Virus record (IMG/VR): IMGVR_UViG_3300043446_005562
Location: 62,001 to 126,000 of that record
Reading direction: 5' to 3' (one strand)
DNA length: 64,000 nucleotides
In this document: positions 12,896 to 46,600 of the stretch, piece after piece
Position numbering within the stretch: the stretch's first letter is position 1
How the letters are laid out: each line of letters starts with the position of its first letter
Made by a program: the position numbers and the translations under genes
Notes under the pieces: generated by a model
What the model was told of the DNA's origin: nothing
Databases searched by the model: none
Seen by the model: only the letters and a program-made list of their open reading frames with translations

Positions 12896-13657
12896 TTAAG
12901 TACTGATTATGAAGGCTGGGCATCTATAAAAATCAACACCGGCTTGGCCCTCCCAGACGTTATTTGGAGAGTTCTTTGCTGCATCAAGAAACTGGGCCTG
13001 ATGAGCTAATGATTCACCGGTATGATGATCGAGTATGTCTAAATTAACGTTGTAACCGTTGTTAAGATCCTGATTTACAATGGACCAGTAATATCTGACT
13101 CCGCCGTTTGCTCCACTGGTCGATTGGCTTGTACCATTACCACCGGCTGCAATATTGCCGTAAAAATCTACTCCGCCACCGGCTGGCCACATTTGAGATG
13201 GTGGCGGCGCAAACGTTATGCCAGGGATTTGAAAAATCCACTCACTCCAAAGACGTATGTTAACATCAATATTGGTGTTTGGATCATTGGTTACAACTTC
13301 AAGGCGCCCTCGATTGTCAAAGGGCCAGTGATCATATCCTTTAAAATCTCCCCATCGTATTTTGCCATTGCTCCACGCATAATTATAGATATTTTCGCCA
13401 GATGTGCTATTGCGATTAATATAATAAGAAGTTCCTGAATATGTTCCAGCCGTAATGTAGCCGTTCATTGAGCTATGGGGAGCAGGATTCGAAGAATCTA
13501 GATCAAATTGTGCAATATCGCCTGCCGCAAGACTGGCTGTTCCGTTTTGAGTGAATGCTCTGATCAAACTATTGGTCGAGGTTGTGCCGACTGATGTGCC
13601 GTTCCATCCAACTCTCACGCTGGAGCCGCTCTGCATTACGTATGGACTTGTTGCCAT
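12896..13657 (-). CDS. Probable fibre-associated virion protein
   Basis: 253 aa, G/N/S-rich beta-type composition; start overlaps the stop of the giant fibre gene. Confidence 0.6.
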   Translation of the reverse strand: MATSPYVMQSGSSVRVGWNGTSVGTTSTNSLIRAFTQNGTASLAAGDIAQFDLDSSNPAPHSSMNGYITAGTYSGTSYYINRNSTSGENIYNYAWSNGKIRWGDFKGYDHWPFDNRGRLEVVTNDPNTNIDVNIRLWSEWIFQIPGITFAPPPSQMWPAGGGVDFYGNIAAGGNGTSQSTSGANGGVRYYWSIVNQDLNNGYNVNLDILDHHTGESLAHQAQFLDAAKNSPNNVWEGQAGVDFYRCPAFIIST

Positions 13658-29907: not shown

Positions 29908-32088
29908 TTAATTAAATGCGACCGTTATTGTGTCAATTTTTATAGCAGAATTACAGATTTGAACCTCAACATAGATTCCGTTTGTTGCATTGAATCCGCC
30001 AAAAGTACCGTTGATTGTACCACCGCTTGATGATCCGAGTCTAATGCCTGGAGTGTCGGTACCTGAAGTGCTACCATCATTGAATGTTCCAAAATCATAT
30101 TCTGCACCATGTAATAATAAAGGTGGCGAACCTGTTCCGGAGTTTCCAACGGTTGCTCCAATCTTTCTAACAAATACTTTTAAGTATTGATTTTGCAGAT
30201 CGCTTAGTGCTGTTCCTACAAACGTTCCGGCGAATACCATTGAAAAACTTGGGATTGGGGTAGAAGATACACCTAGAGTTGTATAGAATAATCTGTAAAA
30301 GCTTGCGTTACCAGTTAACGAAGAGTAATTTGGATTTGCGCCGTTTTTATCAGGTTTAAATGAACTTAGATTTGGTTGAATCGTTGCAGTACTTGGATCG
30401 GTCAAGAAAAATCGATCCGGCCGTACTATTGTTCCGCCAACCACACAGGCTTCCCCGTTTGATAGAGTCGCGGTTGGATCCCAGGAGGTTGTGTAATCTG
30501 AGGCTTTTCTCCATTGTTCATCATTAAAAGTTTCAACGTATTGTGTGCTATTACCTGAAGTTGAGTAAGTATCAACTAGGATTGAATGATTAGTCGATGA
30601 ATTTGCTCCGCCAGTATTCCATGGATCGAATAGGGTTGCAGTCGCAGCCCCACTTGTTCCACGATATCTAAAGCTGGCAGCTGTGATTGTCCAATCCGAG
30701 ATATCATACTGAGCATTTGCATTGTTATAGTAATTGGTCCAACCGGTAAAAGAACCGGAAGATGGACTCCATGCATACTCTGAAATGGTCGGTAGACCGT
30801 AGTTTGCTGCTGTGAATTGAAAATTTTGAGAGGCTGCGCCTGAGCGGCCCTGTGTGTTTGCATTCAAGTTGTCAATATCATCAGTATGAGCATCGAACTT
30901 TGAACCAAGTATGTAATACTCTACACCACTTAGGTGCTTGGTAACAATATTAGCAGACGTACCAGACTCAGAGATTGTGGTTGATGCGGCTCCACCAAAG
31001 CTTGGAGTCGATGGATTCTTGTCTAAGAAAACATCACTTTGTGTGTATGTGAATGTTTGTGCACCGTCCGTTGTTGAATCCGTAACATTGGTAATTACAA
31101 TGTGATATCGACCCCCACTCAAACCGTTTGCGGTTAAAATAGTATCAGCATTTACTGAAACTGAAATGTTTGCTTTGTATTTTAGGCTATCTGCTCCGTA
31201 ATTTGAGATGGTGACTGTGATTCCAGCATTCGCGCCGCTTGATGAGTTTGAACCATCACCAGTTATGGCTGGAGTTGTGTAGGTTGCAAGTAGAGTTGTC
31301 CCGTCAGCGTCATAAACATCAACCGTTATTGTTGAATCCCCGCCCAATCCAGTAACAGCGTTTGCAGTTGAAAAGCTTGGAGTGGTCGATGTGGTTGCTG
31401 ACCGAGTTGAGGCAGCCCAGGTGTTGGTTTTAAAAGGTGAACCTTCTGAAGTTGGCGTACTAATTCTCACGCTGTATCGACTAAGAGATTCGCTTACATA
31501 ACCGGAAGAAGTTCCATCATTTGTGTTAAAATGGCTTGAAAAGGTTGGAGTTGGAATATACACGTTCAGAGTAGTATTGTCTCCAGGCTTTTGATCTGCA
31601 AAAACGTCTGCTCCAACAAAATTTACCTTTGAATAGGTTCCGAGCGAGGTGCCTTCATCGTAAAATTCAATTGCGCCGCCTGATACTGATACATCAACTT
31701 GACCGGAAGTTCCGCTGGTTGACACGGTTATGCCTGAGCCAAAATTAATTATCTGTGTTCCAACTAGCGCGGAAGTTCCATTTGACTGAACCTCTAGCGA
31801 AGAGCCCGCTGCTCCCGATTGAAAAACTGTCCAGTCGCTCAATTGAGTTGAGTCTGTGCCAGGCTCATTTGTTAAAGAATAATAGGTTCCGCTGGTACCG
31901 CTGATTCCAACGCCGACTATCATACCCAAACGACGTCTGTCCTTGGTGATGGCAAGCATTGCAGAAGTATCGTCAACGTTTCGTAGACCGTCCCGACCAT
32001 ACACGGCGTCGGTCACCGCATAGATATCTGTGGTGTCCGTTGGTGCAACTATACCTGTTACTGTAACTGATCCGGTTATTTGACTCAT
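29908..32088 (-). CDS. Probable virion structural / fibre protein
   Basis: 726 aa, S/T/G-rich; N-terminal AITKDRRRLGMIVGV resembles a module seen in phage tail proteins. Confidence 0.65.
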   Translation of the reverse strand: MSQITGSVTVTGIVAPTDTTDIYAVTDAVYGRDGLRNVDDTSAMLAITKDRRRLGMIVGVGISGTSGTYYSLTNEPGTDSTQLSDWTVFQSGAAGSSLEVQSNGTSALVGTQIINFGSGITVSTSGTSGQVDVSVSGGAIEFYDEGTSLGTYSKVNFVGADVFADQKPGDNTTLNVYIPTPTFSSHFNTNDGTSSGYVSESLSRYSVRISTPTSEGSPFKTNTWAASTRSATTSTTPSFSTANAVTGLGGDSTITVDVYDADGTTLLATYTTPAITGDGSNSSSGANAGITVTISNYGADSLKYKANISVSVNADTILTANGLSGGRYHIVITNVTDSTTDGAQTFTYTQSDVFLDKNPSTPSFGGAASTTISESGTSANIVTKHLSGVEYYILGSKFDAHTDDIDNLNANTQGRSGAASQNFQFTAANYGLPTISEYAWSPSSGSFTGWTNYYNNANAQYDISDWTITAASFRYRGTSGAATATLFDPWNTGGANSSTNHSILVDTYSTSGNSTQYVETFNDEQWRKASDYTTSWDPTATLSNGEACVVGGTIVRPDRFFLTDPSTATIQPNLSSFKPDKNGANPNYSSLTGNASFYRLFYTTLGVSSTPIPSFSMVFAGTFVGTALSDLQNQYLKVFVRKIGATVGNSGTGSPPLLLHGAEYDFGTFNDGSTSGTDTPGIRLGSSSGGTINGTFGGFNATNGIYVEVQICNSAIKIDTITVAFN

Positions 32089-32102
32089 TTACTTTTCTTT
32101 TT

Positions 32103-33002
32103 TTATGATACAATCATTGACACTGCGCCAACGAGAGGATTTTTTGATCTAAATACATTATATGTGGTGGTCTGACCAAAATCGTTTGTGATTGATATTG
32201 GCAGATACGTAATATTTCCGCCTCCGCTTGAATAGCCGTCTCCTGAATCTGCAAGCGCAAACGGTAAGCCGTTATAATATATTGAACCCGGTACTCCATA
32301 ACTTGCTGGAATTGCAAGATACTTATAATCATTTGCACTAAATGAATATGTTCCAGCCTTGCCTCCAAGCAATTGTCCATTTGTTAGATTTTTGACGAAT
32401 GACGCGGTTGGAGTTGATGTAGAAGATGAAGTACCCCAATAAACTTTCCAAAACCAATACTTGGTTAAAGAAGAGGCATAGGTGCCGTTCAGAGTATTTG
32501 TGCCGCTGATGCTCCAAGTGTATGAACCGTAAGTGTTTAGGCTAACTGCACTGCCGTAGGTATGAGAGTTGGAACCGTCAGCTGGCTGACCGGTTAAAAG
32601 AGTACCGGTCGTATCAGTAATTACAATTGAATTTGGAGAAACGTTAGAGTCTTGAGTTGAATTCCAGCTAAAGGTTAACGAAGTAGGTAGAGCATCCCCA
32701 ACCTCCAACACGGAGGCTCCGGAAACTCCAAAGCTGCTGAACGCTGGATTTAGGTATGGGTAGAGTAAATAATCCCACATTTGCTGCATTGTTGCCCCGT
32801 TAAAGGTTTGCCCAACAGTAATACCGCCCAGGGCAGATTGAATTGGAGTTAAATTGGTATAGGTGATACTCGCTCCGCCGCCAGCAACATCATTGCTCCA
32901 GGAGAGATTGCCATTGGAATCTATTACTAGAAATCTGGTCTTGGCATTATCCTGGGTGACCCCGCTAAGATCTACCTGTTTTATTTTTAACTTATGGGAC
33001 AT
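32103..33002 (-). CDS. Probable virion structural protein
   Basis: 299 aa; S/T/G-rich with an Ig-like beta pattern; GATAAATAA motif at 33032-33040. Confidence 0.6.
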   Translation of the reverse strand: MSHKLKIKQVDLSGVTQDNAKTRFLVIDSNGNLSWSNDVAGGGASITYTNLTPIQSALGGITVGQTFNGATMQQMWDYLLYPYLNPAFSSFGVSGASVLEVGDALPTSLTFSWNSTQDSNVSPNSIVITDTTGTLLTGQPADGSNSHTYGSAVSLNTYGSYTWSISGTNTLNGTYASSLTKYWFWKVYWGTSSSTSTPTASFVKNLTNGQLLGGKAGTYSFSANDYKYLAIPASYGVPGSIYYNGLPFALADSGDGYSSGGGNITYLPISITNDFGQTTTYNVFRSKNPLVGAVSMIVS

Positions 33003-33061
33003 ATTAGATTGATACGTTTTTCTCTACAGAGTTATTTATCAATCCAAAACCGATTAAGAAA

Positions 33062-34018
33062 TTAATTACGTCTTTCTTTTGCGTATAAAATTGCCTCAAC
33101 GTATTTTGCAGAAGCCGTATTTGGGTCAATGCTGGAAAAGTCAGCTTCGAATGGATTTTTATTGATAAATTCACCCTTATAAAACAACTTTCCGCCATTA
33201 TTATTTGTGACCCCGGCGTTATGCATGATATTGTGTTTGTTATAGTCATTAAGGGATGAAGTTCCCCAGCTAAAATCCAGTTCAGGTTCAATTAGGGTCT
33301 GTGCACCCATTTTCCAGGCACCCCAAAGAACTGCCCACATATCTGCGCACCATTTTTGAATTGGATGATATTTTGCAAGTTCATCCGGGGGTAAAGTTTC
33401 GCGTTCATGTGCTTCTCGATCTGCCATGTATCGATAAAGGGCTAGGGAAACCTCTTTTACGTCTTGCCAATATTCGGCTGAAACCCCCTTCATTAGATAT
33501 TGAGCTCCGCCTGAATTATTTTGATTTTGTTCCACCATCTCGGGTAAAATCTTGGCAAGAGAACACATATCGACAAAAAGATCATTTGATTTTGATTTAA
33601 TGTATTCGGCTCCAATGTAAGAGACAGTATCGCTGACATACCAGTATAGGTTATCTCGCATTTCATCAAAATTCGGCAGTTGCCTAAAGATGATGTCAGA
33701 ATCATGATAGAAGATGACCTCTTTGTTGAGCTCAGGATGGGCTCTGAAATGCTGCTCAATTATGTCGGGTCTAAGAATTGGAATGTAACCGAAATTATTG
33801 GTAATGGTCTTGCGATAAGAAAAAAATCTAACGTATGGGTACTTTGCAGCAAGGGCATTAAGCTCTTGGGAAGGCGTGCCTGCATGCGCCCAAAGTACTT
33901 CAATCCAATTTGGATTTATTCCGGCTTTTATAAAATTATGAATCATTACCTCAACCTGCCAATGAAAGTATGGCACATCAGGTTGAGCTGATAAAAATAC
34001 AATCTTCTTAGATAACAT
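33062..34018 (-). CDS. GT-A fold glycosyltransferase resembling plant peptidyl-serine galactosyltransferase (SERGT1, GT96) / Hyp-arabinosyltransferase (HPAT, GT95)
   Basis: PYFHWQVEVMIHNF, GYIPILRP, FYHDSDIIF (DxD) and WCADMWAVLW motifs parallel GT95/96 conserved blocks. Confidence 0.7.
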   Translation of the reverse strand: MLSKKIVFLSAQPDVPYFHWQVEVMIHNFIKAGINPNWIEVLWAHAGTPSQELNALAAKYPYVRFFSYRKTITNNFGYIPILRPDIIEQHFRAHPELNKEVIFYHDSDIIFRQLPNFDEMRDNLYWYVSDTVSYIGAEYIKSKSNDLFVDMCSLAKILPEMVEQNQNNSGGAQYLMKGVSAEYWQDVKEVSLALYRYMADREAHERETLPPDELAKYHPIQKWCADMWAVLWGAWKMGAQTLIEPELDFSWGTSSLNDYNKHNIMHNAGVTNNNGGKLFYKGEFINKNPFEADFSSIDPNTASAKYVEAILYAKERRN

Positions 34019-34049
34019 ACTAAATTATACTAGAAATTGCCTATTGGAT

Positions 34050-36884
34050 TTATGGACATGCTTGAAAATCCATCACCGTACCGTCATCATAAATTTGGAT
34101 AACTCCGGTCGATATTCTAAACCATTGTGAATTACCTACAAAGCCAGAGGTTGGTGGATAATCGACTGTAACTGTATCACCAATTGTTGGATAGATGCCC
34201 ATTCCTGTGTGATAGAGTAGAGTATCGATTGTAAAGCTGCATGCTGGGTTAGGAACCGGGCTTCCAGCACTAGAAATCATGAAGGAGCCGGCTGCTAGCG
34301 TTGTAGTAGTCGTTGTTGCAGCCGCCGTTGTAGTAGTCGTTGTCGGAGCCGCAGTTGTTGTAGTCGTTGTCGGAGCCGCAGTTGTTGTAGTCGTAGTTGG
34401 AGCAGCTGTTGTGGTTGTTGTAGTTAAGCACGGACCGGCACTCATACAATCACCAAAAATTGCACCGCTTATTGTTGCAGCCGGCGTAGTTGGGAAAGTT
34501 GTTGCGAAATTAGTATAAACATATCCGTCATCTCCTAACGCATAATCACTAGGAGTTAGCCACATTAAGCTGCTAACAATTACCCCAATTCCAGTTTGAG
34601 TACATGTTCCGCATTCTAATTGATCAGCCGTGTAAATGTATATTACTGCGCCAGTCGTAGTTGTTGTAGTTGGAGCCTCAGTCGTAGTTGTTGTAGTTGG
34701 AGCCTCAGTCGTAGTTGTTGTAGTTGGAGCCGCAGTTGTTGTAGTTGTTGCTGGTGCATTGGTTGTTGTAGTGGTAGTTCCGCTACATGGAATTGATACG
34801 CCAGTTGCAGCATCATAGCATTGTTCACAAGCACCTTTGGAAATATTGATTATACTGGTTGTAAAGTCGCCTATTGTAAAACCTATTGGCGAGTGAGCTA
34901 ACACTACTCCAAGAGTTGATGAATTTCCATCATTAACTGATAATGAGAAACCTTCATTGTTTATGATATTAATGTTGGAACCGTCGGACGATACTAGTAC
35001 ATCATACACTGGACAAGTTGTGGTTGTCGTTGTCGGAGCCCCAGTTGTTGTAGTTGTAGTTGGAGCCTCAGTTGTTGTAGTTGTAGTTGGAGCCTCAGTT
35101 GTTGTAGTCGTAGTTGGAGCCTCAGTTGTTGTAGTCGTTGTCGGAGCCGCAGTTGTAGTCGTAGTTGGAGCAGCGGTAGTTGTAGTCGTAGTTGGAGCTG
35201 CCGTTGTAGTAGTTGTGGTAGGAGCAGCAGTCGTCGTTGTAGTCGTAGGCGCGGCTGTTGTGGTTGTCGTAGCAGCAGTTGTGGTTGTTGTGGTTTCACC
35301 TTGAATAGGCACAGTCACAGTATATTCGCAAACTCCTTTGGAGAATGTGTAAACCCCTACCACATTTGGAATTCCTGCAAAAATTGGATTTGCAACATTG
35401 AAGGTCCAAGGTAGAGTTACGTATTCACCAATTATACCGGTTAAATCGTGAGAATCATTACTTTGATCAACGAACGTAATTGTGTATGGCCCGCTTGGGG
35501 TTCCGCTGAATGTTATGCTAGTCGGCAAAGCTCCATCTCCTGGAGAATAGGCTAGTCCATTTGGCGCGCACGTTGTTGTAGTAGTTACGCCTGAGGTTGT
35601 AGTTGTTGTGGTTGCCGCTGTCGTTGTAGTTGTTGTTCCAACCAATTCCGGTATCAAATAGAATGGGCTAAACGAAGTAACTTGCGCATAAATTGATCTG
35701 GTTGCATAGTTTGGAACGTATACATCACCGGCGATATCCCCAGCCTCGATGGTCTCATCCGTTAAGACTCCGCTAACTTCATGAAATATTCTGACTAGAT
35801 CAAATTCTGCTTCGCTGATGCTTTGCGGTAGGGTAAATTTAACTATTGTACCGTTGGGCATGACAGAATTCCAATCGGTTATGCTAAATGCATAAATTGA
35901 ATTTTGTAGATAGAATCCAGCAGGCAATGAATCTCCGTTAGTATTATCGATTGGATTTGGCATTTTACAGATTGTAACTGGGCTTGCCTCAGTTGGGGTA
36001 CCGATTAGCTGAATGCCAAAATTAAAATTAGTTGAGCTTCCGCTTACAATATGGGTATTACATGAATATCCGGCTTGCGAGCAGTATGGATCCTCTGTGA
36101 AGTAGTGTAGTAGTAGTTTATCGCCCGTATCTAAATTAAAACCAGCAACACTAGGATTCCAATAGAGTTGACAAGTCGAATCCGCTTCATTAAAGGTTAC
36201 GGCGGTTGTGCCGCCATCACTGCTTAAATAGGCGGGCGCAGTAATATCCCCATCGCCAACTGGAATTAATTGACCGTTCACAAATAGCATGAACGCAGTT
36301 GAAGCCAACGGAGCTGGCACCAAAAATATTCCATTTTCGGATGCATTTGTGTTGTTTGTGGAAACCGCATCGGCTGTTGCCTGCATCACAACTTCTTGCA
36401 TGCACTTTGCGCCAGAGCCTCCGCCCGACAACAGGGTCCAGCCAGTTGATGTCAACCAGACGTAGACACCCTCAACGTAATTTCCTTGAGCCGCAATATA
36501 GACAATTTCACCAGGAACTCCAGTCGTTGGTAATTCGCCAAACACCCTGAGTCTTAATCTCAATATCTCAGCAACATCCTCTGCAATAAAATTCTTTGCA
36601 GTAACAGTTCCGCTTGGGGACAAGTTGATTACGGTTGGATAGACTGAATTGACCAGCTGTGTTCCGTATACTGAGAGACCTTGTCTTACTTTTACCAGAT
36701 CAGCAGATACTGTATTAATATCAACAGTAACCGCTGAGGTTCCCTGATTATAATTTATTGATGATAGAAATTCTTTGATAGCAGAGGTAATTTCTCCAAA
36801 GTTAAAATTGGAGAGCTCAACAACGGATGTTGTGCTGGAATTTGATAGTTTTTTGACCGCTGTTAATTTTACCTGTACTGACAT
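34050..36884 (-). CDS. Mucin-like Thr-rich virion protein
   Basis: 944 aa; four poly-Thr tracts (TTTTTAAP / TTTTTTEAP) separated by small Cys-containing domains. Confidence 0.75.
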   Translation of the reverse strand: MSVQVKLTAVKKLSNSSTTSVVELSNFNFGEITSAIKEFLSSINYNQGTSAVTVDINTVSADLVKVRQGLSVYGTQLVNSVYPTVINLSPSGTVTAKNFIAEDVAEILRLRLRVFGELPTTGVPGEIVYIAAQGNYVEGVYVWLTSTGWTLLSGGGSGAKCMQEVVMQATADAVSTNNTNASENGIFLVPAPLASTAFMLFVNGQLIPVGDGDITAPAYLSSDGGTTAVTFNEADSTCQLYWNPSVAGFNLDTGDKLLLHYFTEDPYCSQAGYSCNTHIVSGSSTNFNFGIQLIGTPTEASPVTICKMPNPIDNTNGDSLPAGFYLQNSIYAFSITDWNSVMPNGTIVKFTLPQSISEAEFDLVRIFHEVSGVLTDETIEAGDIAGDVYVPNYATRSIYAQVTSFSPFYLIPELVGTTTTTTAATTTTTTSGVTTTTTCAPNGLAYSPGDGALPTSITFSGTPSGPYTITFVDQSNDSHDLTGIIGEYVTLPWTFNVANPIFAGIPNVVGVYTFSKGVCEYTVTVPIQGETTTTTTAATTTTTAAPTTTTTTAAPTTTTTTAAPTTTTTTAAPTTTTTAAPTTTTTTEAPTTTTTTEAPTTTTTTEAPTTTTTTGAPTTTTTTCPVYDVLVSSDGSNINIINNEGFSLSVNDGNSSTLGVVLAHSPIGFTIGDFTTSIINISKGACEQCYDAATGVSIPCSGTTTTTTNAPATTTTTAAPTTTTTTEAPTTTTTTEAPTTTTTTGAVIYIYTADQLECGTCTQTGIGVIVSSLMWLTPSDYALGDDGYVYTNFATTFPTTPAATISGAIFGDCMSAGPCLTTTTTTAAPTTTTTTAAPTTTTTTAAPTTTTTTAAATTTTTTLAAGSFMISSAGSPVPNPACSFTIDTLLYHTGMGIYPTIGDTVTVDYPPTSGFVGNSQWFRISTGVIQIYDDGTVMDFQACP
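34300..35640 (-). repeat. Four Thr-rich tracts (T5-6-A/E-A-P units, 24-27 nt)
   Basis: About 34300-34425, 34655-34775, 35020-35295 and 35575-35640. Confidence 0.85.
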
Positions 36885-38283: not shown

Positions 38284-40356
38284 TTATCGGTTTATTGCAA
38301 TGAACGGCACATTTAGACGAGGTCTGGCATTGTCAATGATTGAGAGGGTAGATTCATCCCTAATGAACAATTGACTCACTACAAATTCATGATCCTCGCT
38401 CTGAATCATAGTGTTAAATAGTCTGATATTTGCAATTAGATAATTTGCGCTAGGTACACACCAGGTAGCAGTTGTTTCAAAACTAAATGCGCCTGGCTTA
38501 ATCACATTGGACTGGTATACGGTTTCAAGCTTATTAAAATTCTTGATATTGGCAGGATCCTGTCTTAGCTGATAAAGATTAATCTCAAATTGGCCAAATT
38601 CGCTTGAAATTGGAATAATTAGCGGATACCATCTAAAATACTCAATGTTACCGGCTGAGTAGGTGTATTCTTGTGAATTTATTGTGATCTTAATACTTAG
38701 ATTTGGTGTACCAGAAAGATCCTGGACAATAGCCTGGATGATTAAACCTTTCTGATCATAGTCATCATAACCTCTGAATATCGTCACATCCTGGCTGCCC
38801 CTATTAAAATTAATTAGTGCAGCAAAGGTCATATTTGGAGTCTCAACCGTTGAGGCTGACTTTTTATAGACGATTGCATTCTCAGCCTGTTTGAAATTAA
38901 CTATGCCCGAGCCGGTCGTGGTTTCCAAAATGGGTCGTTTTTCGCCAGTTTTGAAACCCAAAGTTTTATAGCCTTCAACTATTACGTATTTGCCCTTGGC
39001 TCCAAAAGAATCCTTTGGGCCATTCATTTTTATTCTGGCCTTGTTGGCATTTAGGTCAGCCACATTAATATCGCCAGTCACCAACTGATTTTGGCGCCAG
39101 GTTTTAAAAATTTCACTGTCCTCATAGGCATAGATCTCATTGTCTGGTGAAAATTCCTGAGTGGTCGGTAGAGCATTTGAAACCAGAGTATAGGAATTTA
39201 TTTTATGATTGATTGCGCTTAGGTCGTAATAGTATTCAATTAACGGTGCATAATTGAATGTGATATCCAAAATTTTATTTTTGATATCCGGATGAATGGT
39301 CCGACGTGACTCATCGAATCTCGTTGAAATTGTTGAAAACTGCTGTTTATCAAGAGCATCGGCAGTTTGAACCCTGGCCTCAGCTCCAAATAATTCTTTG
39401 GATGATGTGATGATATTATCTAGGAAAGTTCGGTCAGCTGCTTTCATCAACATATCGATGTTGGGATGGAATTTAGTCAATTGAATTTTCCAATAGATTG
39501 GCTCCATCATAAAACCTCTATAGAGATAAGAGCCCTGAATTTCGTACATACGATTGACCAATGGAAAGAAGAGATAGTCTCTCTTTCTGGGCTGGGAGCC
39601 TTTGCCGAAAATCATCTGAAAATAGCTGTGATCTATGTGAATTTCAAATGGAACCTCAAAATCAACTCCAAATTCTGTAAAATTGGGCTTGTTATCCGGA
39701 AATTTATTGTCTGGCACCATTATCTTGATGCACTTACGTTCGGTTGTTTTAAAAAGAGTCCACTCCTTAAAAATGAAGTCGGCGCCGTCCCGGTCGGGTT
39801 CAGTTTTAAAATAGACAACCTCATGCCCGAATATCTTATTGGTTTGTAGACTTAATTCCTTGGCAATACCGGTTGCTGTGCCAACTTCATAGGGTCTGAA
39901 AGTTGATTCGCGTTCAGCAATTATGGCTGGGCAGCGTTCGTCTGAACAAAATACGCTTGGCGTAAAAAGATCAGCCTGAGGCTGCGCGCTCTTTACTCTA
40001 ATCTTGACTTCATTTATTTTTAGTTCGGTTGAGAGAGCCTCGTATGTTGAATCATCGTACTCGTATTTTACCTCAAAAAATACTGATTTTTGACCAAATT
40101 CCAGATCTGTTAAATTTGTTAGGTCGTCTGGTGTAAAATTGTACCACAATGACCAGTTTGCACGGTCGTTGGAGTATCTTAACTTTCGGATTATGTAACC
40201 TGAATTTGCAGAGCCCAGGGTCAAATCTTCGTCAAACCCGGTAATCTCTACCGCTTTCTGCACGGGCTCGCCGGTCGAAAAAATTCGGTAGTTCTTAGAG
40301 AAGCTTATTGAATTTTTTGACTGATCTGTGATAATTTTATAGGCTACTACTTGCAT
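38284..40356 (-). CDS. Neck/head-closure protein (T4 gp14-like) with N- and C-terminal extensions
   Basis: FGHEVVYF...FGVDF...PRKRDYLFFPLVNRMYEI core; start moved to ATG 40356 because a GATAAATAA motif lies at 40373-40381. Confidence 0.65.
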   Translation of the reverse strand: MQVVAYKIITDQSKNSISFSKNYRIFSTGEPVQKAVEITGFDEDLTLGSANSGYIIRKLRYSNDRANWSLWYNFTPDDLTNLTDLEFGQKSVFFEVKYEYDDSTYEALSTELKINEVKIRVKSAQPQADLFTPSVFCSDERCPAIIAERESTFRPYEVGTATGIAKELSLQTNKIFGHEVVYFKTEPDRDGADFIFKEWTLFKTTERKCIKIMVPDNKFPDNKPNFTEFGVDFEVPFEIHIDHSYFQMIFGKGSQPRKRDYLFFPLVNRMYEIQGSYLYRGFMMEPIYWKIQLTKFHPNIDMLMKAADRTFLDNIITSSKELFGAEARVQTADALDKQQFSTISTRFDESRRTIHPDIKNKILDITFNYAPLIEYYYDLSAINHKINSYTLVSNALPTTQEFSPDNEIYAYEDSEIFKTWRQNQLVTGDINVADLNANKARIKMNGPKDSFGAKGKYVIVEGYKTLGFKTGEKRPILETTTGSGIVNFKQAENAIVYKKSASTVETPNMTFAALINFNRGSQDVTIFRGYDDYDQKGLIIQAIVQDLSGTPNLSIKITINSQEYTYSAGNIEYFRWYPLIIPISSEFGQFEINLYQLRQDPANIKNFNKLETVYQSNVIKPGAFSFETTATWCVPSANYLIANIRLFNTMIQSEDHEFVVSQLFIRDESTLSIIDNARPRLNVPFIAINR

Positions 40357-40433
40357 TAAACCCTTCTTTTTGTTATTTATCCGATTGTTGCCGGCTTTAC
40401 TCCGCAAATAAATAACAAGAAACGGGTTAGCTT

Positions 40434-41231: not shown

Positions 41232-43604
41232 TTAGCCGGCTGGATCCTGTTGCGCGCCGCCGCCTGCATCTATTTGTTCAGCAATACTGCCTGAATAAAC
41301 GCTATTTGTAACTTGGTGATTGGTTAGATAGGTGCCGTTTATGACAACCCATGTTTTATTGGCCGCTGTGCTGCCTTGATCGTATTTCACAAAATCGTAA
41401 ATACTTACATAGCATGGAATTGATGAATTTATGCCGGTTGAGTCTTGACGAAAACCTCTTAGTATTAATTGTGGATAATTTACCTGATTTACGCCATAAT
41501 AGCTAAATTGCGCAAAGACTGAGCCTGGATCAATAGCCCGTGCCGTGAATTGTGAGCTCGTCCCGGCTCCAGTTCCGCCGAATTTGTAAGTCATTGGAAA
41601 TGATCTCATGCCAGGTCTCCAAGTTTGGCCATAAATATTTACGTTGAATTTGACATTATCAATGCTCCAAGGCCAATGATTTGGAATACCTCTAACGTTT
41701 ATGCCATAGGACTCATAACCATATCGGAACGGGTCCGTAGCAATATTACCAATGTTTTTAAGATCACCAGTTGTTAAATCGACTGCTGCATGACTTGCTG
41801 TTCCAAGTGTACCTAAATCATTTAATACCCAATCTGTGATTGAGAATATTAATTGAAAGGTCACAACCTTTCCGACTTTTGTGTAATAACCGGCCTCATC
41901 GCCAATTGTAGGCTGTGCATTCTTAAGACCAGTATTTGAGGTTGATGCTGGTGCAGGCAGTGTTGAATTTCCAGCAAACCGTATGACCGGGGTAAAGGTT
42001 CCTTCTTGATACTCGTCTAACACATTTGCGTCCGTGCTATTGGCAGTTGGTACGGTACTGGTTGAAACTGGGAATGGTACTGCGCTATTTAGTCTATTTG
42101 CTTTAATACGTAGCGCATAATCGCTTGTGCTAGACGTACCTGCTCCAAGAAATATCTCCTTTGCGGTATTTGGTGCAAGCAACATCAAGTTACCACCGCT
42201 TGCTCCACCGCTCTTTACGGTCATATCGCCATTTGAGCCAGTTCCAGTAGAGGTGATTATGAATGCTGTGTTTGAGGTAAGATCAGTATCGGTCAAAACT
42301 GCAGTCGATGAATTATTCTTGAGAGTTAGTGAAATTTGATCAAGTACAACATTATCGATTGAATTGCCTGAATCTGATTTAATTAGGATATTATTGGTTG
42401 AGTTTGCAACGTTATTTGGGTCAAAACCAATTCCAAATTTGTAGAGGCTGTCCCAATTAAAATGTAGCCCGTCAACCAACGCGCCAGTTATTTTTGAGTT
42501 AGCGTTTGAGCTGTTTTCAAGTATGCTATTGCTAAAACCAAATTTAAGAATTCTATTATTTGGCGGAGAAGACGTTGTTGCGCCAGCCGCTGTTTTCTTG
42601 TTTATGGTCCACGTGAATCTAGAGTTAAGAGCCGGTGTTGTTGTTGTGTCAGCCGAGTGCAGATTAAAATCCACGCGAATCACAGCTTTTCCTGGAATTG
42701 AAGTGTCAGATATTCTAAATTTGCGGACTCTTAGATTTTGATAGGTTGGGCTTATTACGTAATTTGCGGTACCTGAATTTGTTAAATGACCTTCTGCTAA
42801 ATCGTCAACTGATCCCAATTCAAGTTGATGACGGTGACCGGTTGCGCCGTTTAAATGATCAGCTTCGGTTGCTGCATTCGAGGCTTCATAATAAGAATAC
42901 AACGAGAGCAGTGAAGTGTATGGAAAGGCATCCTCATTTATGTCTAACGAAGGCAATGAGCCTAAACGATTGGTGCTTGGAGTTACAGCGTAACCATTGA
43001 TTGAGCTTGCGCCAGAGACTATATTTTTTGCAGTATTTGGATCAAAATTAAAGAGAACTGTTTGAGAGTTTTGAGCAGTTCCGCCTGAAATTATCCAGTT
43101 GGGTGCATTTGTTGTATAGGCTCCCTGCGTACCGGCTGTTGTAATTCTATCAATTCCTCTAGAATTTTTAATTGGAATTAGAATCTTTGAAATCGCGGAG
43201 GCATTGATACCTAACTGCCAAGTAGAACTGCCAGCTAATGAGATAGAGTTAAAAATATCGTAAAAGTCGGTAATAACATCCCAGCCGCTTGAGCCGCTTG
43301 CAGTTTTCTTGTAAATCTTATCGTCTGTTATAAAATAATCCCCAATCACGGCGCTAGTTACAGCACCGGATGTAATTGTTACGCCTGTCGTTAGGGCAGT
43401 ATCTGAATATATTTGTGGGCCAGCCTCACCCTGAGGTCCGATTGGGCCCTGTGGACCAGCTGCGCCAGTTGAACCGGTTGCACCGGCTGGACCAGGTTCG
43501 CCAAAGCCTAACGCAAGGAGCTGGTTAAAATTAAAATTAAGTTTGCTGGCTAAGTCGGCCGGATTGTCTACCGAGAAGACTTCTTTTAGATTAATGTTTA
43601 TCAT
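41232..43604 (-). CDS. Tail fibre-like protein with a short Pro-containing collagen segment
   Basis: 790 aa; 10 GXY triplets GEPGPA...GPQ (43413-43502); LDEYQEGTFTP...GYYTKVGKVV motif typical of fibre distal domains. Confidence 0.7.
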   Translation of the reverse strand: MININLKEVFSVDNPADLASKLNFNFNQLLALGFGEPGPAGATGSTGAAGPQGPIGPQGEAGPQIYSDTALTTGVTITSGAVTSAVIGDYFITDDKIYKKTASGSSGWDVITDFYDIFNSISLAGSSTWQLGINASAISKILIPIKNSRGIDRITTAGTQGAYTTNAPNWIISGGTAQNSQTVLFNFDPNTAKNIVSGASSINGYAVTPSTNRLGSLPSLDINEDAFPYTSLLSLYSYYEASNAATEADHLNGATGHRHQLELGSVDDLAEGHLTNSGTANYVISPTYQNLRVRKFRISDTSIPGKAVIRVDFNLHSADTTTTPALNSRFTWTINKKTAAGATTSSPPNNRILKFGFSNSILENSSNANSKITGALVDGLHFNWDSLYKFGIGFDPNNVANSTNNILIKSDSGNSIDNVVLDQISLTLKNNSSTAVLTDTDLTSNTAFIITSTGTGSNGDMTVKSGGASGGNLMLLAPNTAKEIFLGAGTSSTSDYALRIKANRLNSAVPFPVSTSTVPTANSTDANVLDEYQEGTFTPVIRFAGNSTLPAPASTSNTGLKNAQPTIGDEAGYYTKVGKVVTFQLIFSITDWVLNDLGTLGTASHAAVDLTTGDLKNIGNIATDPFRYGYESYGINVRGIPNHWPWSIDNVKFNVNIYGQTWRPGMRSFPMTYKFGGTGAGTSSQFTARAIDPGSVFAQFSYYGVNQVNYPQLILRGFRQDSTGINSSIPCYVSIYDFVKYDQGSTAANKTWVVINGTYLTNHQVTNSVYSGSIAEQIDAGGGAQQDPAG

Positions 43605-46600
43605 TAAATATATTTAATTTTTAATTTTGGCACCAAGCTTATTCCAGTACTCGGTTTTTTAAGAATCGATCCTGATAAGATTGCTGAATTAGAATTATTT
43701 ATTTTGACCCCTTTAATTAGAGAATAGTCTAGATTATCTAACTGATTGTAAGGCACGTCTGCAATACTAAAGTTTGCAGCATAATTTGGTTTTTCGTAAA
43801 AATCTATCATGTCTAGCGCATAGAGTTTCACTAGATTTTGAAGGGTGTAATTGGTTAGATACTGCTCAAATGTTGAATTTGGGAAAAGTAGATCAGACGA
43901 TTCAATCGGTTGATTATTTGCGTCCTTAAAGAATTTTTGGAATTCTGATCTTAATCCATTATTGATTAGAGCCTTTGCAATGATCTTTCTCAGGTTGAAT
44001 TTTAACTTTATTTCAGCAGTATACTCCGAATAGATGATATCGATTGATTCGCCAGTTGCGTCTTTTAGATTTGCAAAGTATGAATCAGGATTTTCAAAAA
44101 TCTGATTTGTAACTGAAAGCACATTAAAAGAACCGACTGTGAAATTCTGTGGAACGTTCAATAGTTTTGAAACAAATGAATAGTCTTCGATTACGCGCTT
44201 TGTACCAGCTAGCGGATAGCGATTGGCTTTGTTAAAATATGCATAATGGTATCCTAGATCCCAACTGCTGGCTAGGCAGTTATAAGTAGATTGATCAATT
44301 GGAGTTTCTGCAATTAATGGGTATTGGGCCTTATACGAGCTATTTCCTTCAAAATCTAAAATCGCTTTTGTTGAATATTTTACAAATGAGAATTCTGGTA
44401 ATTTAAAGAAGTTAGCCACTCTTGGATTCAATAGTGAATTTGAGCCGCTTACTTCAAAATTACCAAGCTGAGTTGAATATTTAAAACCAGTCAATGGTCT
44501 AAATAGAATATCGTATTCCCCAGAATATCTGAATATTTCGTAATTGTTTGAGTTAGCTTCGTAAATTTGAAATCCTCCCAGTACTTCAGCACTCGCTGTT
44601 TGTACATAGGTTTCTTTAAGTGCAACTTGCGTATTTTTATTAATTTCATCAGCTCTTTCAATTGCTATTGAAATTTTTTGATTCTCCAGTAATTGACCGC
44701 CATCATAGGTTTCATAAGAGATCAACGGTGAATTTCTTTCCAATAGTTTGACAAAATTTGCAAACGAGATATTCTTAAATAGATTTGCAAAATAATCCTT
44801 TCCGCCAAAGAGCTGGAATTGCTGAGATGAATTCAACCAGGTATTTGAACTTCCGCCCGGAAATGAAACGCCTGAGATTGAAATAGTTGGCCCAATTGAT
44901 GTTGCTGATACTACTGGTTGTATTATTGAAAGCTGGCGCTTACACTGAATTTGCCAGTCATTTGAATTTGAGCCGCTGCCAACATTACTTCTGACAACAA
45001 ATTGCAGATAAAGATCAGTAAGATTTGGTGCAATCGTTATTTGAGTAACCTGGCCTATTAAATATTGGGTTGGATCTGCTAGATCTGAAACTGTTATGAT
45101 ATCGCCCAATTTAAGTGGAGTTGAGGTTACGCTGCTTAGCGTTGCTCTAAGATACAGATCAGTATAGTCATTTGCAAGATCAATTCCCGGAAATGCGGTT
45201 GTGGTAGTTGTGGTTGTGGCCGGCGCTGTTGTTGTGGTTGTTGTACCAGCGGCTGTTGTAGTTGAGGTTGTTGTAGTGGTCGCCGGATCAATGATTATGA
45301 AGCTTGAAAAACCTGCATCTATGGTTTCCGGCGATTCAAAAAGTAGTATATTATCATTGACGATTCGTAGTAAGTGAGACGTAATTGTTGAATTAGATAG
45401 ATCACTCTTGATAATATCTTGTTGAGCCGTTGAATCTAATATTGTACTTGTTCTTACTGGTATTGAAATTTCTCCGTTTTTTCCAATAAACATTAATGGC
45501 GCAAATGCAGGCAACGGTGAAGAGTTACCAAGTGAAGTATTGGTCAGATAATCGTGAGATGCACTAATTGGATTAACAAAGTCTTCAAGTCTAAAGCTTA
45601 GTTCTGGCATTTGAAAAAGCTGTGCAGCATTCGTTAAATATTTTGAACCTGTAATACTAACTCCAGTTGGACTAATGTCTACACCGGTTGCAAGTTTAAC
45701 CGTTGAAAATGATGACTTTGTGCTATTGTATTTTTTATCCCTAGCTGCGTAAATGAAATTGTAAGTTAAGTTTGAAACTCCATTTTGATTGAATTTAAGT
45801 CGGTAATCTCCAAATACTCCTAAATAGCTTGGCTTGGCTGAAATGATGCTAAGTTTGTTGTCTAGTGTTAATTGAATTTGGGTTAGATTTGGAGAATCGG
45901 TTGAATTATCGTAGAGTCTAACTATTCTAGAGCTGGTCGTTCCTAACAGGGCATACGCTGGCTGACTAATTGTAAAAAATTGAGTTGCTAATTCCCCGTT
46001 AGAAGATCCGCTTAATAGCTGTTGGGAAGTTGATTTTGTGTAAATTTGACTATCTCCAAATGCCATGATGAATTGGCTATCGGTTGGGTCACTACCCTTT
46101 TTAACCAAAATCACTGAATTTGAGGTTGGTGTGTATGAAAAGGTCTGACCAGTTGCCGGATTCGTAAATGTACCAGATAGATTTGAAACATCTGGATAGG
46201 CACCTGCTTTTAATGAAGTAAACTCCAGATCGCCATATCCGCTAGGATCATCAAGAGTTTCATAAATTGCTGAAATTGTGTAAATTGTTGGAGCAGCATC
46301 ATTTAGGATATTTTCATCCAAAAATAATTTAGTTTGATCCAATCTATTATCTTGGAATTGCAGCGACTCGGCCAGCAGAACTGGATTAATTTGACTAATA
46401 TCACTTAATGCTAGCTCAATCAAAATCAAGATTGATTTAGCATTGGTATTTTCAATAACTCTAAATTTAACTGGAGATTGAGGGCCAGTTAAGTCCTCTG
46501 GGATAGGCTTTAGCAAAATACTAAAATTGTAGTCTTCGAATCTATCAGTTGTTATTGAGATTTGATCGTTGACTATTTCTGAGAATACAAATTTTGCTCC

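Follow-up and report, generated by a model that had tools for sequence, protein, structure and literature searches.

A phage glycosyltransferase related to the plant HPAT and SERGT1 enzymes, encoded next to poly-threonine proteins, as a candidate for virion O-glycosylation

The locus and its genes

The window, that is the whole stretch of 64,000 nucleotides that was analysed, comes from the 252.6 kb genome of a freshwater jumbo phage. The ATG-initiated open reading frame at 33062..34018 on the minus strand is real and codes for a protein of 318 aa, which is referred to here as the GT. It sits in a block of co-oriented structural genes separated by gaps of 14-59 nt. The features discussed are as follows.

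33062..34018, minus strand: HPAT/SERGT1-like GT-A glycosyltransferase of the GT95/GT96-related superfamily (from the open reading frame, PHROG 4417, AF2 fold and hhalign)
33695..33703, minus strand: codons for D106-S107-D108, the invariant DxD after the beta-strand VIFY (alignments A1 and A2)
34050..36884, minus strand: 944 aa "beads on a string" protein, the proposed acceptor, upstream of the GT with a gap of 31 nt, 24 T5-6 runs
35571..35636, minus strand: Thr-rich linker 1 of the 944 aa protein, residues 417-438
35016..35294, minus strand: Thr-rich linker 2 of the 944 aa protein, residues 531-623, (T5-6-[A/E/G]AP) x 11
34653..34778, minus strand: Thr-rich linker 3 of the 944 aa protein, residues 703-744
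34299..34424, minus strand: Thr-rich linker 4 of the 944 aa protein, residues 821-862
43604..49780, minus strand: 2058 aa protein of the structural module, a possible second acceptor, six T5-7 runs around residues 566-590 and 1501-1528
32103..33002, minus strand: 299 aa Ser/Thr-rich (25%) protein, directly downstream of the GT, co-oriented, gap of 59 nt
29908..32088, minus strand: 726 aa protein rich in Ser and Thr (28%), assigned to PHROG 31482 (unknown function), same direction as the GT
38284..40407, minus strand: 707 aa protein with a T4-type neck / head-closure domain (phrog_679, E 7.6e-8; weak match to PF11649, T4 neck)
10488..12815, minus strand: 775 aa GT4 + GT9 fusion (Glycos_transf_1, 5e-14; Glyco_transf_9, 5.4e-7; phrog_2170)

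The presence of the neck / head-closure protein nearby indicates that the surrounding block is a virion morphogenesis module. Two giant ORFs at 13657-22089 and 22122-29666 (2810 and 2514 aa, 37-41% Ser) carry (G-S/T-S)n repeats of the GTSGSS type.

The 944 aa protein consists of an N-terminal domain of 416 aa and four domains of 76-92 aa with poly-Thr linkers between them, and it holds (T5-6-[A/E]AP)n repeats. Runs of five or more Thr (T5+) were found in just 2 of about 280 ORFs of the genome, and the richest of these, the 944 aa protein, adjoins the GT. No Pfam, PHROG or fold match was obtained for this protein. Its N-terminal domain was modelled at a pLDDT of only 58.7 and matched PDB structures with TM of at most 0.23; the virion role of the protein therefore rests on its position. 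Complex prediction for the GT with a 24-residue linker peptide gave a score of 0.01, which by the scale of the tool is "no answer".

Conservation of the glycosyltransferase

The 318 aa protein is a member of PHROG 4417 (E 6e-66), an unnamed family which comprises 854 clusters at 50% identity and at least 3,199 clusters at 90% identity. The family is labelled hypothetical in every source, and there is no biochemical evidence for any member. The alignment of 57 relatives with 34-82% identity (A1) revealed (near-)invariant columns at W20, N28, Y78, D106, D108, F111, Q221, W223, M227 and W228, and further at G171, H266, G269 and K281. The blocks PYFHWQ (16-21), MIHNF (25-29), GYIPILRP (77-84), HDSDIIF (105-111) and WCADMW (223-228) are all present. 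Four such motifs (PYFHWQ...MIHNF, GY...LRP, HDSDIIF and W..DMW) had been pointed out in a sequence-only reading of the locus, and this part held, as they coincide with the invariant columns of the family. From general knowledge of GT-A enzymes, D106 and D108 are inferred to be the metal and nucleotide-sugar site.

The possibility that the protein is an inactive GT fold with a structural or chaperone role in the assembly of poly-Thr proteins was considered. It is favoured by the absence of activity data and by the location of the gene among assembly genes. Against it, the DxD, His and Lys are strictly invariant in more than 140 diverse members (alignments A1 and A2) and are common to the HPAT-positive family, and fusions of the domain with other catalytic GT domains recur; this explanation is judged highly improbable. 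The fusions are seen in relatives of 500-780 aa, in which the GT domain is joined to a GT2, GT7C, GT6, GT29 or GT25 domain. Catalytic activity of the phage enzyme nevertheless remains an inference.

All of the eight nucleotide differences between the gene and a contig from an estuary metagenome are synonymous, which shows purifying selection on the gene. Parts of it are represented by contigs from river metatranscriptomes, and a metatranscriptome contig of 151 nt spans its junction with the downstream 299 aa gene; such RNA-library contigs may come from DNA. Beta-strand 1 starts at residue 7, and neither a signal peptide nor a hydrophobic segment was found in the 318 aa protein. The maximum 19-residue Kyte-Doolittle mean is 0.74, and the GT is thus without a transmembrane segment.

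Fold and homology

The fold of the GT was predicted by AF2 with a pLDDT of 96.9 and compared with 550,129 reviewed Swiss-Prot models, so that predicted models stood on both sides of the comparison. Ranks 1-9 were occupied exclusively by SERGT1 (GT96) and HPAT/RDN/PLENTY (GT95) proteins, with TM of 0.53-0.69 and E of 6e-12 to 1e-7. The top match was Arabidopsis SERGT1 (Q8VYF9; residues 389-700 of 802 aa, E 5.7e-12, 17% identity), and the Chlamydomonas enzyme of 748 aa also matched, over its residues 36-303. The HPAT-type matches showed TM of 0.61-0.69 and E of 4e-10 to 1e-8 at an identity of just 14-16%, and the GT8, GT24 and GT6 models of Swiss-Prot reached TM of at most 0.51. Among AFDB clusters the first three matches were the GT's own family, followed mostly by algal and protist proteins, and "Hydroxyproline O-arabinosyltransferase-like domain" was the commonest name after the own family. 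The neighbours in the ESM Atlas were clusters with members bearing Pfam HPAT. NCBI-style and PDB searches with the phage GT or its profile gave nothing useful, and no solved structure represents the family. A TALE-repeat match from the PDB profile search was rejected as a short low-complexity artefact.

The Pfam search with the 318 aa protein gave no match even at E 10, and the Pfam HPAT HMM (PF23452, curated threshold 23.9 bits) matched nothing in the whole genome of this phage or in those of five further carriers; among the 57 relatives it weakly matched three (best E 0.019). As the direct HMM search was blank, the sequence link was made through a bridging bacterial family. Alignment A1 was compared by hhalign with A3, an alignment of 50 bacterial proteins that are mostly PF23452-positive and include no plant sequences. 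The two aligned over 256 columns with Prob 87% and E 4e-6, bringing together the DxD (phage D106/D108 with the invariant D108/D110), W-x-x-D-M, H266 with H231 and K281 with K247. The GT-A control was negative (Prob 0.8%, E 0.07).

Fold, profile-profile homology and motifs together support the placement of the phage GT in a sister family of the GT95/GT96 enzymes of plants and algae, a large one with phage and bacterial members. It is called a sister family and not a member of GT95 or GT96 because it lies below the Pfam HPAT threshold. The relationship to GT95/GT96 claimed by the sequence-only reading thus held, and the outcome that would have refuted it, best matches to unrelated GT-A families without GT95/GT96 likeness, was looked at and not met. 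Its statement that these families are known mainly from green plants and algae needs qualification. GT95 and GT96 are called plant-specific in the plant literature (PMC4738400), yet HPAT-like domains are already present in bacteria, and the fold is therefore not confined to plants. Its expectation that the gene would inform on the origin of extensin glycosylation enzymes is to be qualified as well, as the present data give no information on the direction of evolution. No paper connecting HPAT, GT95 or GT96 with phages was found in the literature searched.

Gene order across loci

The proteins encoded around the GT were analysed for T5+ runs. The protein at position -1, directly upstream of the GT, carried such a run in 57 of 77 viral loci, the background being about 3%. 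The frequency was 21/75 at -2 and 8/71 at -3, and 0-6% at every other position. The partners at -1 fall into 32 families without BLAST links, all co-oriented with the GT, and the association at the level of lineages has a P of about 2e-5. All 20 of the closest relatives of the window GT have a poly-Thr protein at -1. The result was replicated in bacterial genomes, where 19 of 28 loci with the short form of the GT showed a T5+ run at -1.

Where the phage is annotated, the protein at -1 is the major head protein (two PHROGs) or the tail tube / major tail protein (two PHROGs). These capsid and tail-tube proteins end in poly-Thr C-terminal tails, for example ...PTTTTTTQATTTTTSHA. The GT gene lies directly downstream of the major head or tail tube gene in bIL285, CHPC836, R3.3, VPE25, phiCTP1 and RQ1. 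The carriers of the gene include Lactococcus phage CHPC836, Lacticaseibacillus phage R3.3, Clostridium phage phiCTP1 and Staphylococcus phage RQ1. As the GT directly follows a poly-Thr virion protein in many unrelated phages, a sugar coating of the particles is suggested.

The association has exceptions. About a quarter of the viral loci have no T5+ run at -1, and in bIL285 and VPE25 the capsid protein upstream of the GT homologue has no poly-Thr tail. Among long two-domain bacterial forms a poly-Thr neighbour was found in just 2 of 48 (2/49 when ORFs down to 30 aa were allowed). In the reverse direction, a GT was near a poly-Thr (T7+) gene in 3 of 56 viral loci, so that the pairing is enriched and neither obligatory nor exclusive. 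No paper on the poly-Thr tails of GT-carrying phages was found in the literature searched. The gene order itself is shown; the poly-Thr acceptor of the phage GT is inferred from it.

A GT of the same superfamily could instead act on another acceptor: it might modify different virion proteins rich in Ser, Thr and Gly, for instance the (G-S/T-S)n giants or the neighbours of 299 aa and 726 aa, or it might elongate a glycan begun by another enzyme. In favour of this, structural proteins rich in Ser, Thr and Gly are unusually abundant in the window (37-41% Ser in the giants, 25-28% S+T in the neighbours), SERGT1, the best structural match, acts on Ser, and some GT homologues have no poly-Thr neighbour. 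On the other side, just 4 of 80 loci have (G-S/T-S/T)n repeats no more than 8 genes away from the GT, and none has them at -1, whereas the association of poly-Thr with the GT is tight, and in small siphophages the sole low-complexity hydroxyl-rich segment beside the GT is the poly-Thr tail. This alternative is considered unlikely. GTSGSS-type repeats as the acceptor are disfavoured in particular, since they do not co-occur with the GT family. The acceptor peptides named in the sequence-only reading do exist, TTTTTAAP-type repeats in the 944 aa protein and GTSGSS in the two giant ORFs; its proposal of a Ser/Thr-rich virion acceptor gained strong comparative support for poly-Thr and none for GTSGSS repeats.

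The location of the gene also bears on the possibility that the GT alters a glycan of the host envelope, be it teichoic acid, LPS, the capsule or a polysaccharide of the cell wall, and so brings about superinfection exclusion or a change of serotype. Temperate phages and prophages of Bacillota and Bacteroidota are among the carriers of homologues, and serotype-changing phage glycosyltransferases are well known and have been reviewed. Against this, the gene lies inside late morphogenesis operons, between capsid or tail-tube genes and connector or chaperone genes, and not at lysogeny or moron positions; the GT has neither a membrane segment nor a signal peptide; and the positional link to poly-Thr proteins would be left unexplained. 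This explanation is judged very improbable.

Proposed function and significance

The interpretation preferred, by a modest margin over its negation, is that the GT is a soluble, probably retaining GT-A enzyme which O-glycosylates the poly-Thr tracts of virion proteins; its activity, donor and acceptor are inferred. In this proposal the GT would be a soluble, cytoplasmic, single-domain GT-A enzyme in which D106 and D108 of the DxD would hold a divalent metal and the nucleotide sugar. The sugar would be moved to Thr hydroxyls in the extended poly-Thr tracts of new virion proteins, before or during assembly. In the window phage the sugar would be placed on the (T5-6-AAP)n linkers within the 944 aa protein, with the 2058 aa protein as a possible further acceptor. 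The anomeric configuration would probably be retained, by analogy with GT95, GT96, GT8, GT24 and GT6; the donor sugar and the stereochemistry are likewise inferred. The phage surface would then carry linkers or tails with mucin-like glycosylation, and any biological role of this glycan is also an inference.

The first sugar may be lengthened by other phage glycosyltransferases. Such extension is suggested by the second GT domain fused to the family domain in many relatives, and by the GT4 + GT9, GT2 and epimerase/dehydratase genes present here. The 775 aa GT4 + GT9 fusion could possibly take part in this lengthening or act for the (G-S/T-S)n giants encoded near it. The GT2 gene and the sugar epimerase/dehydratase lie in the phage genome as well.

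Glycosylation of hypermodified bases (5-hydroxymethyl pyrimidines) in phage DNA, as a protection against restriction, was considered as a further role. DNA glycosylation is a common role of phage glycosyltransferases, and a divergent second gene of the thymidylate-synthase (TS) family (76 bits), which could be a hydroxymethylase, is found beside a dCMP deaminase in the replication module. The GT, in contrast, lies about 59 kb from this gene, within the structural module; none of five complete carrier phage genomes (35-93 kb) has a gene of the TS/hydroxymethylase family; and the nearest characterised relatives are protein O-glycosyltransferases. The probability of this role is very low.

A bolder version of the poly-Thr glycosylation proposal is that the family represents a widespread, unrecognised machinery of mucin-type poly-Thr O-glycosylation in phages of Bacteroidota and Bacillota, and in addition the branch tied to the origin of GT95/GT96. 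It is judged less likely than not. If true, it would imply a glycan coat on capsids, tail tubes and fibre-like proteins, and the family would be the prokaryotic/viral branch from which, or alongside which, the GT95/GT96 extensin enzymes arose; recognition of extended hydroxy-amino-acid repeats would then be older than plants. Experimental demonstrations of virion glycosylation have so far come mainly from mycobacteriophages. If the proposal is true, virion glycosylation would be made general in phages by a second, unrelated enzyme family, one linked to the poly-Thr tails of capsid and tail-tube proteins in dairy, enterococcal, staphylococcal, clostridial and aquatic Bacteroidota phages. This would bear on the stability and adhesion of phages, on their recognition by the immune system and on phage therapy.

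To our knowledge, no structure of GT95 or GT96 has been solved, and a soluble, confidently folding phage homologue of 318 aa would offer an accessible model for their structure and mechanism. A family labelled hypothetical gains a specific, testable function with a predicted substrate, and a simple rule for annotation is to look for a PHROG 4417 gene behind the gene of a poly-Thr protein.

Comparison with known systems

GT95 transfers from UDP-beta-L-Araf to Hyp and GT96 from UDP-Gal to Ser, both with retention. The phage GT resembles the GT95 enzymes HPAT1-3, RDN1, PLENTY and NOD3 (PF23452) in the GT-A fold over nearly the whole length and in the order of the blocks PY-x-x-WQ, Y..(N/R)(R/P), DxD, W-x-x-D/E-M, H and K, which was tested on bacterial PF23452-positive proteins; extended low-complexity hydroxyl-bearing repeats are the substrate in GT95 and the proposed substrate of the phage GT. 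Unlike GT95, the phage GT is soluble without a type II membrane anchor and belongs to the bacterial cytoplasm rather than the Golgi, and its proposed acceptor is Thr, not hydroxyproline. GT96 is related to GT95 (PMC8012813), and SERGT1/SGT1 shares with the proposed function the O-glycosylation of a protein at a hydroxy amino acid beside a repetitive motif. SERGT1 is, however, a multi-domain membrane protein of about 750-800 aa that aligns in part, whereas the phage GT is a single domain of 318 aa. The next structural tier, which holds the best solved structures, is formed by GT8, GT24 and GT6 (LgtC, glycogenin, the UGGT catalytic domain, alpha-1,3-GalT) together with WbbM; these share the DxD-dependent GT-A core but differ from the phage GT with TM of at most 0.51 and rmsd of 7-10 Å.

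A biological parallel is the virion glycosylation of mycobacteriophages (Freeman et al. 2023, summarised in PMC12619734), where phage glycosyltransferases are encoded in or near structural operons and the glycans are on the C-terminal tails of capsid and tail-tube subunits (PMC12619734). The poly-Thr tails beside the GT in Bacillota phages are on the same two classes of protein. The hosts are different, and the candidate acceptor in the window is a multi-domain protein with internal linkers, not a capsid tail. The mycobacteriophage virion glycosyltransferases are of GT2 type and are not known to belong to the phage HPAT-like family. Two hallmarks of phage virion glycosylation are met at the present locus: the GT gene lies in a morphogenesis operon beside a structural gene, and the neighbouring candidate acceptor has a Ser/Thr-rich tail or linker.

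Conserved residues and family size

The open reading frame at 33062-34018 on the minus strand was found to be genuine, with an ATG start and a product of 318 aa (hereafter the GT). Its alignment with 57 relatives (34-82% identity to the query) revealed invariant columns at Y78, D106, D108, Y134, G171, Q221, W223, M227, F249, H266, G269, F279 and K281, and near-invariant columns including W20, N28, F111 and W228. The same invariant core was also present in 83 longer relatives. The motif blocks named in the sequence-only reading all held: PYFHWQ with MIHNF (16-29), GYIPILRP (77-84), HDSDIIF (105-111) and WCADMW (223-228) match invariant or near-invariant columns. The family, comprising 3,199 clusters at 90% identity and 854 at 50% identity, is PHROG 4417, labelled 'unknown function'; homologues in annotated phages are always labelled 'hypothetical', and a Pfam search with the GT gave no match. 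More than half of a diverse set of relatives were 500-780 aa long, the extra part in a number of them being a second glycosyltransferase domain (GT7C, GT2, GT6, GT29, GT25 or GT32-like). That the GT is an inactive structural protein is unlikely, being opposed by the invariant DxD, H and K and by this recurrent fusion to catalytic domains.

Predicted fold and relationship to the HPAT family

An AlphaFold2 model built from the 57-sequence alignment (pLDDT 96.9, pTM 0.93) predicted a GT-A core of the alpha/beta Rossmann type, in which the DxD immediately follows strand 101-104. The model was searched with Foldseek against all reviewed UniProt models. Ranks 1-9 comprised Arabidopsis SERGT1 (peptidyl serine alpha-galactosyltransferase, GT96; E 5.7e-12, 17% identity), six HPAT/RDN/PLENTY/NOD3 enzymes, HPAT1 (hydroxyproline O-arabinosyltransferase, GT95) and Chlamydomonas SERGT1 (TM 0.53), the GT95 matches having TM by query of 0.61-0.69. 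GNT1, GT8 enzymes, UGGT and others followed at TM 0.51 or less. Among AFDB fold clusters the top three were members of the GT's own family (TM 0.86-0.89), and the next were mainly algal or protist, many named 'Hydroxyproline O-arabinosyltransferase-like domain-containing'. BFVD held one close phage homologue and Lactobacillus phage LP65 Orf49, nothing more. The best solved structures were generic retaining GT-A enzymes only (WbbM, UGGT catalytic domain, LgtC, GT6, glycogenin; TM 0.48 or less); an experimental structure for the family is therefore lacking.

The Pfam HPAT model PF23452 did not match the GT, any ORF of the source genome or five other carrier phages. Weak matches were seen in 3 of the 57 relatives, and this was the sole family matched by more than two of them. 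The ESM Atlas neighbours of the GT were viral and bacterial clusters with PF23452 in 10-58% of members. A Candidatus Microthrix MAG protein passed the curated cut-off at 30.6 bits; its relatives numbered 129 proteins, the majority PF23452-positive and some fused to PqqD. Profile-profile comparison of fifty of these (alignment A3) with the GT family gave Prob 87% and E 4e-6, the 256 aligned columns extending across both families. The PY-x-x-WQ motifs of the two sides coincided; D106/D108 aligned with the invariant D108/D110, W223-x-x-D-M227 with W-E-S-D-M, H266 with H231 and K281 with K247. The negative control, 49 GT2/GT7C-type GT-A domains taken as C-terminal halves of long relatives and run under identical settings, scored Prob 0.8% with E 0.068 across 38 columns. 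The kinship is therefore specific to the HPAT family and not a generic GT-A likeness.

As the GT lies below the Pfam HPAT model's own threshold, it represents a sister family. The SERGT1/HPAT resemblance claimed earlier thus held as kinship: the GT is related to the GT95/GT96 superfamily yet is a member of neither. It differs from HPAT and SERGT1 in falling under that threshold and in having no membrane anchor, and from SERGT1 also in lacking its multi-domain architecture. The plant literature describes HPATs as plant-specific (PMC4738400), and no paper tying HPAT, GT95 or GT96 to phages was found in the literature searched.

In the Microthrix MAG, a protein of 1012 aa that contains the phage-type domain (L288:6001-9039, in the internal coordinates of that locus) lies about 4 kb from a 321 aa Pfam HPAT protein (L291:1333-2298), so both superfamily branches adjoin in one genome. 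Bacterial HPAT-positive proteins with a PqqD fusion were also observed in Pseudomonadota (P0366-P0389). PqqD is a peptide-binding domain of the RiPP-recognition type, and the fusions likewise point to peptide acceptors across the wider superfamily.

Gene order and poly-threonine partners

In annotated siphophages the GT homologue sits within the morphogenesis operon. It directly follows a major head gene in Lactococcus bIL285 and CHPC836, Lacticaseibacillus R3.3 and Enterococcus VPE25, and a tail tube or major tail gene in Clostridium phiCTP1 and Staphylococcus RQ1. PHROGs confirmed these neighbours as two head-protein and two tail families. The upstream protein carries a poly-threonine tail in CHPC836 (...PTTTTTTQATTTTTSHA), R3.3 (...ATTTTTTKAPTTTTTSSHA) and phiCTP1 (gp18, ...EETTTTTNAPITTTTTTV); the RQ1 major tail protein (L006:5223-5925 region) ends ...GSTTTTTTTP and the next ORF is (T7-x-P)n. 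No poly-Thr tail was found on the bIL285 and VPE25 capsids.

This RQ1 ORF (103 aa, nearly all T7-x-P repeats) overlaps the major tail ORF by about 50 nt (L006:5223-5925). A programmed frameshift giving a long poly-Thr-extended form of the tail tube is possible, and so is an annotation or sequencing split.

Runs of five or more Thr (T5+) were scored at positions -8 to +8 around the GT in 80 viral loci (GT 40-75% identical to the query). They occurred in 57/77 genes directly upstream (position -1), 21/75 at -2 and 8/71 at -3, and at 0-6% at all remaining positions. The partners all share the GT's orientation and belong to 32 families unlinked by BLAST. Independent bacterial-genome loci reproduced the pattern for 19 of 28 short-form GTs. 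When short-form lineages were collapsed at 50% identity, poly-Thr was at -1 in 4/7 and at -1 or -2 in 6/7 (lineage-level binomial P about 2e-5 against a 2.8% background). In reverse, just 3 of 56 viral loci found via T7+ coding runs contained a GT. The association is strong, not exclusive.

Together with the second GT domains of relatives, the morphogenesis-operon position and upstream poly-Thr tails indicate glycan building on proteins. The alternative that the GT modifies the host envelope is unlikely, as it mismatches the operon position, the poly-Thr link and the absence of any membrane segment in the GT sequence.

Long two-domain bacterial forms had a poly-Thr neighbour in 2/48 cases (2/49 with small ORFs admitted). 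In both exceptions the neighbour is a double-glycine-leader peptide of 82 aa, with a Lys-rich leader ending GG and a poly-Thr/Cys-rich core (L272:5608-5856 and L277:5615-5863; Mucilaginibacter, Sphingobacterium). Since these peptides look like bacteriocin/RiPP precursors, glycopeptides may be what some bacterial members make.

Candidate acceptors in the source genome

Only two of about 280 ORFs of the source genome contain T5+ runs:

Directly upstream of the GT, 31 nt gap: 944 aa protein, 24 T5+ runs
43604-49780: 2058 aa protein, 6 T5+ runs

The 944 aa protein consists of an N-terminal domain of 416 aa and, after it, four domains of 76-92 aa, with linkers of (T5-6-[A/E]AP)n, 22-93 residues long, between domains. 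Close relatives (518-1106 aa) keep the N-terminal domain and vary in linker and bead number. No fold could be assigned to this domain by fold search, so gene position is the sole basis for inferring that the protein is part of the virion. A complex prediction of the GT with a linker peptide returned no answer.

The sequence-only reading had also proposed GTSGSS-type repeats as acceptors. Their existence held, in two giant ORFs with long (G-S/T-S)n runs:

13657-22089 (-): 2810 aa
22122-29666 (-): 2514 aa

Their acceptor role received no comparative support, as the occurrence of such repeats does not follow that of the GT family (4/80 loci, never at -1). Ser makes up 37-41% of the giants, Gly 25-29% and Thr 12-13%. 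A Gly recurs every three residues, which is a collagen-like periodicity; they would form extremely long fibres if triple helices form. Their DNA is GC-richer (about 0.50 vs 0.38), with long spurious antisense ORFs. A 790 aa protein (41232-43604, minus strand), whose N-terminal part includes a collagen-like stretch of G-X-Y and which matched tail-fibre PHROGs weakly, is likely a fibre.

Proposed mechanism

On balance, we favour O-glycosylation by the GT of poly-Thr tracts of virion proteins. The analysis shows the fold, the homology, the conserved motifs and the gene order. Activity, donor, stereochemistry, acceptor and biological role rest on inference, as does the statement that the GT works like the GT95 and GT96 enzymes. 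It would be a soluble, DxD-dependent GT-A enzyme, probably retaining by analogy with GT95, GT96, GT8, GT24 and GT6. A host-derived nucleotide sugar would serve as donor, its sugar being attached to Thr hydroxyls in extended poly-Thr tracts. Other GTs may then add to the first sugar, so that the particle surface would bear mucin-like linkers or tails. Plant HPAT and SERGT1 offer a close parallel: these recognise extended hydroxy-amino-acid repeats (Ser-Hyp4), and the phage repeat is (Thr)5-6-Ala-Ala-Pro. Mycobacteriophage virion glycosylation (PMC12619734) shares the logic of a GT beside capsid or tail-tube genes and modified C-terminal tails; its enzymes are not known to come from the GT's family and, as far as is known, belong to a different one.

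Other sugar-related genes of the source genome were:

10488-12815 (-): GT4 + GT9 fusion, 775 aa, Glycos_transf_1 and GT9 heptosyltransferase-like domains
Genome 198103-198813 (+) (L292), outside the window: NAD-dependent sugar epimerase/dehydratase, 182 bits
Genome 215245-215724 (-) (L293), outside the window: GT2 glycosyltransferase, 84 bits

From this gene content it is inferred that the phage could modify a host nucleotide sugar and extend the glycan; no nucleotidyltransferase was found in the source genome. The product of the fusion gene, which lies two genes away from the (G-S/T-S)n giants, could possibly glycosylate them; this is an inference resting only on analogy with serine-rich-repeat glycoprotein systems.

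Glycosylation of hypermodified DNA bases by the GT was also considered. In its favour, the source genome encodes a canonical ThyA and a divergent thymidylate-synthase (TS)-family gene beside a dCMP deaminase (L210 in its own locus coordinates):

Genome 28.2-29.4 kb: canonical ThyA
L210:5573-6451 (+): divergent TS-family gene, 76 bits, directly upstream of the deaminase
L210:6451-6906 (+): dCMP deaminase

The latter pair lies at genome 154.6-155.9 kb, outside the window, in a DnaB / Mre11-Rad50-like replication module, and the divergent gene is possibly a pyrimidine hydroxymethylase, which would mean modified DNA. Against this, a TS-family gene is absent from five complete carrier phages (35-93 kb), so the GT family cannot depend on hydroxymethyl-pyrimidine DNA, and the explanation is very unlikely.

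Phage, host and expression

The virus record is 252.6 kb and about 93% complete, the window being its bases 62001-126000. Genes for large terminase, a T4-type baseplate wedge protein, a T4-type neck/head-closure protein, PhoH and a sigma factor in the window identify the source as a jumbo tailed phage. The nearest copy of the GT gene in a cellular-genome bin has 69% identity and comes from a 254 kb contig binned with an uncultured Bacteroidetes MAG, and cellular homologues are mostly from Bacteroidota and Bacillota; a Bacteroidota host is therefore inferred as likely. Near-identical DNA was found in many freshwater, estuary, reservoir and river metagenomes, the estuary, reservoir and freshwater recoveries coming from several independent studies.

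The GT sits in a same-strand gene block with gaps of 14-59 nt, in which consensus scans showed promoter-like and terminator-like sites to be no commoner than chance. Three river metatranscriptomes yielded contigs that agree with parts of the GT at, or close to, 100% identity (region 32000-34290); one of them, 151 nt long, spans the junction with the downstream gene. Judged from the metagenomes and these three runs, the phage is apparently widespread and likely active in situ, with the caution that such libraries can contain DNA. Compared with an estuary DNA contig, all differences in the GT (8/8) were synonymous.
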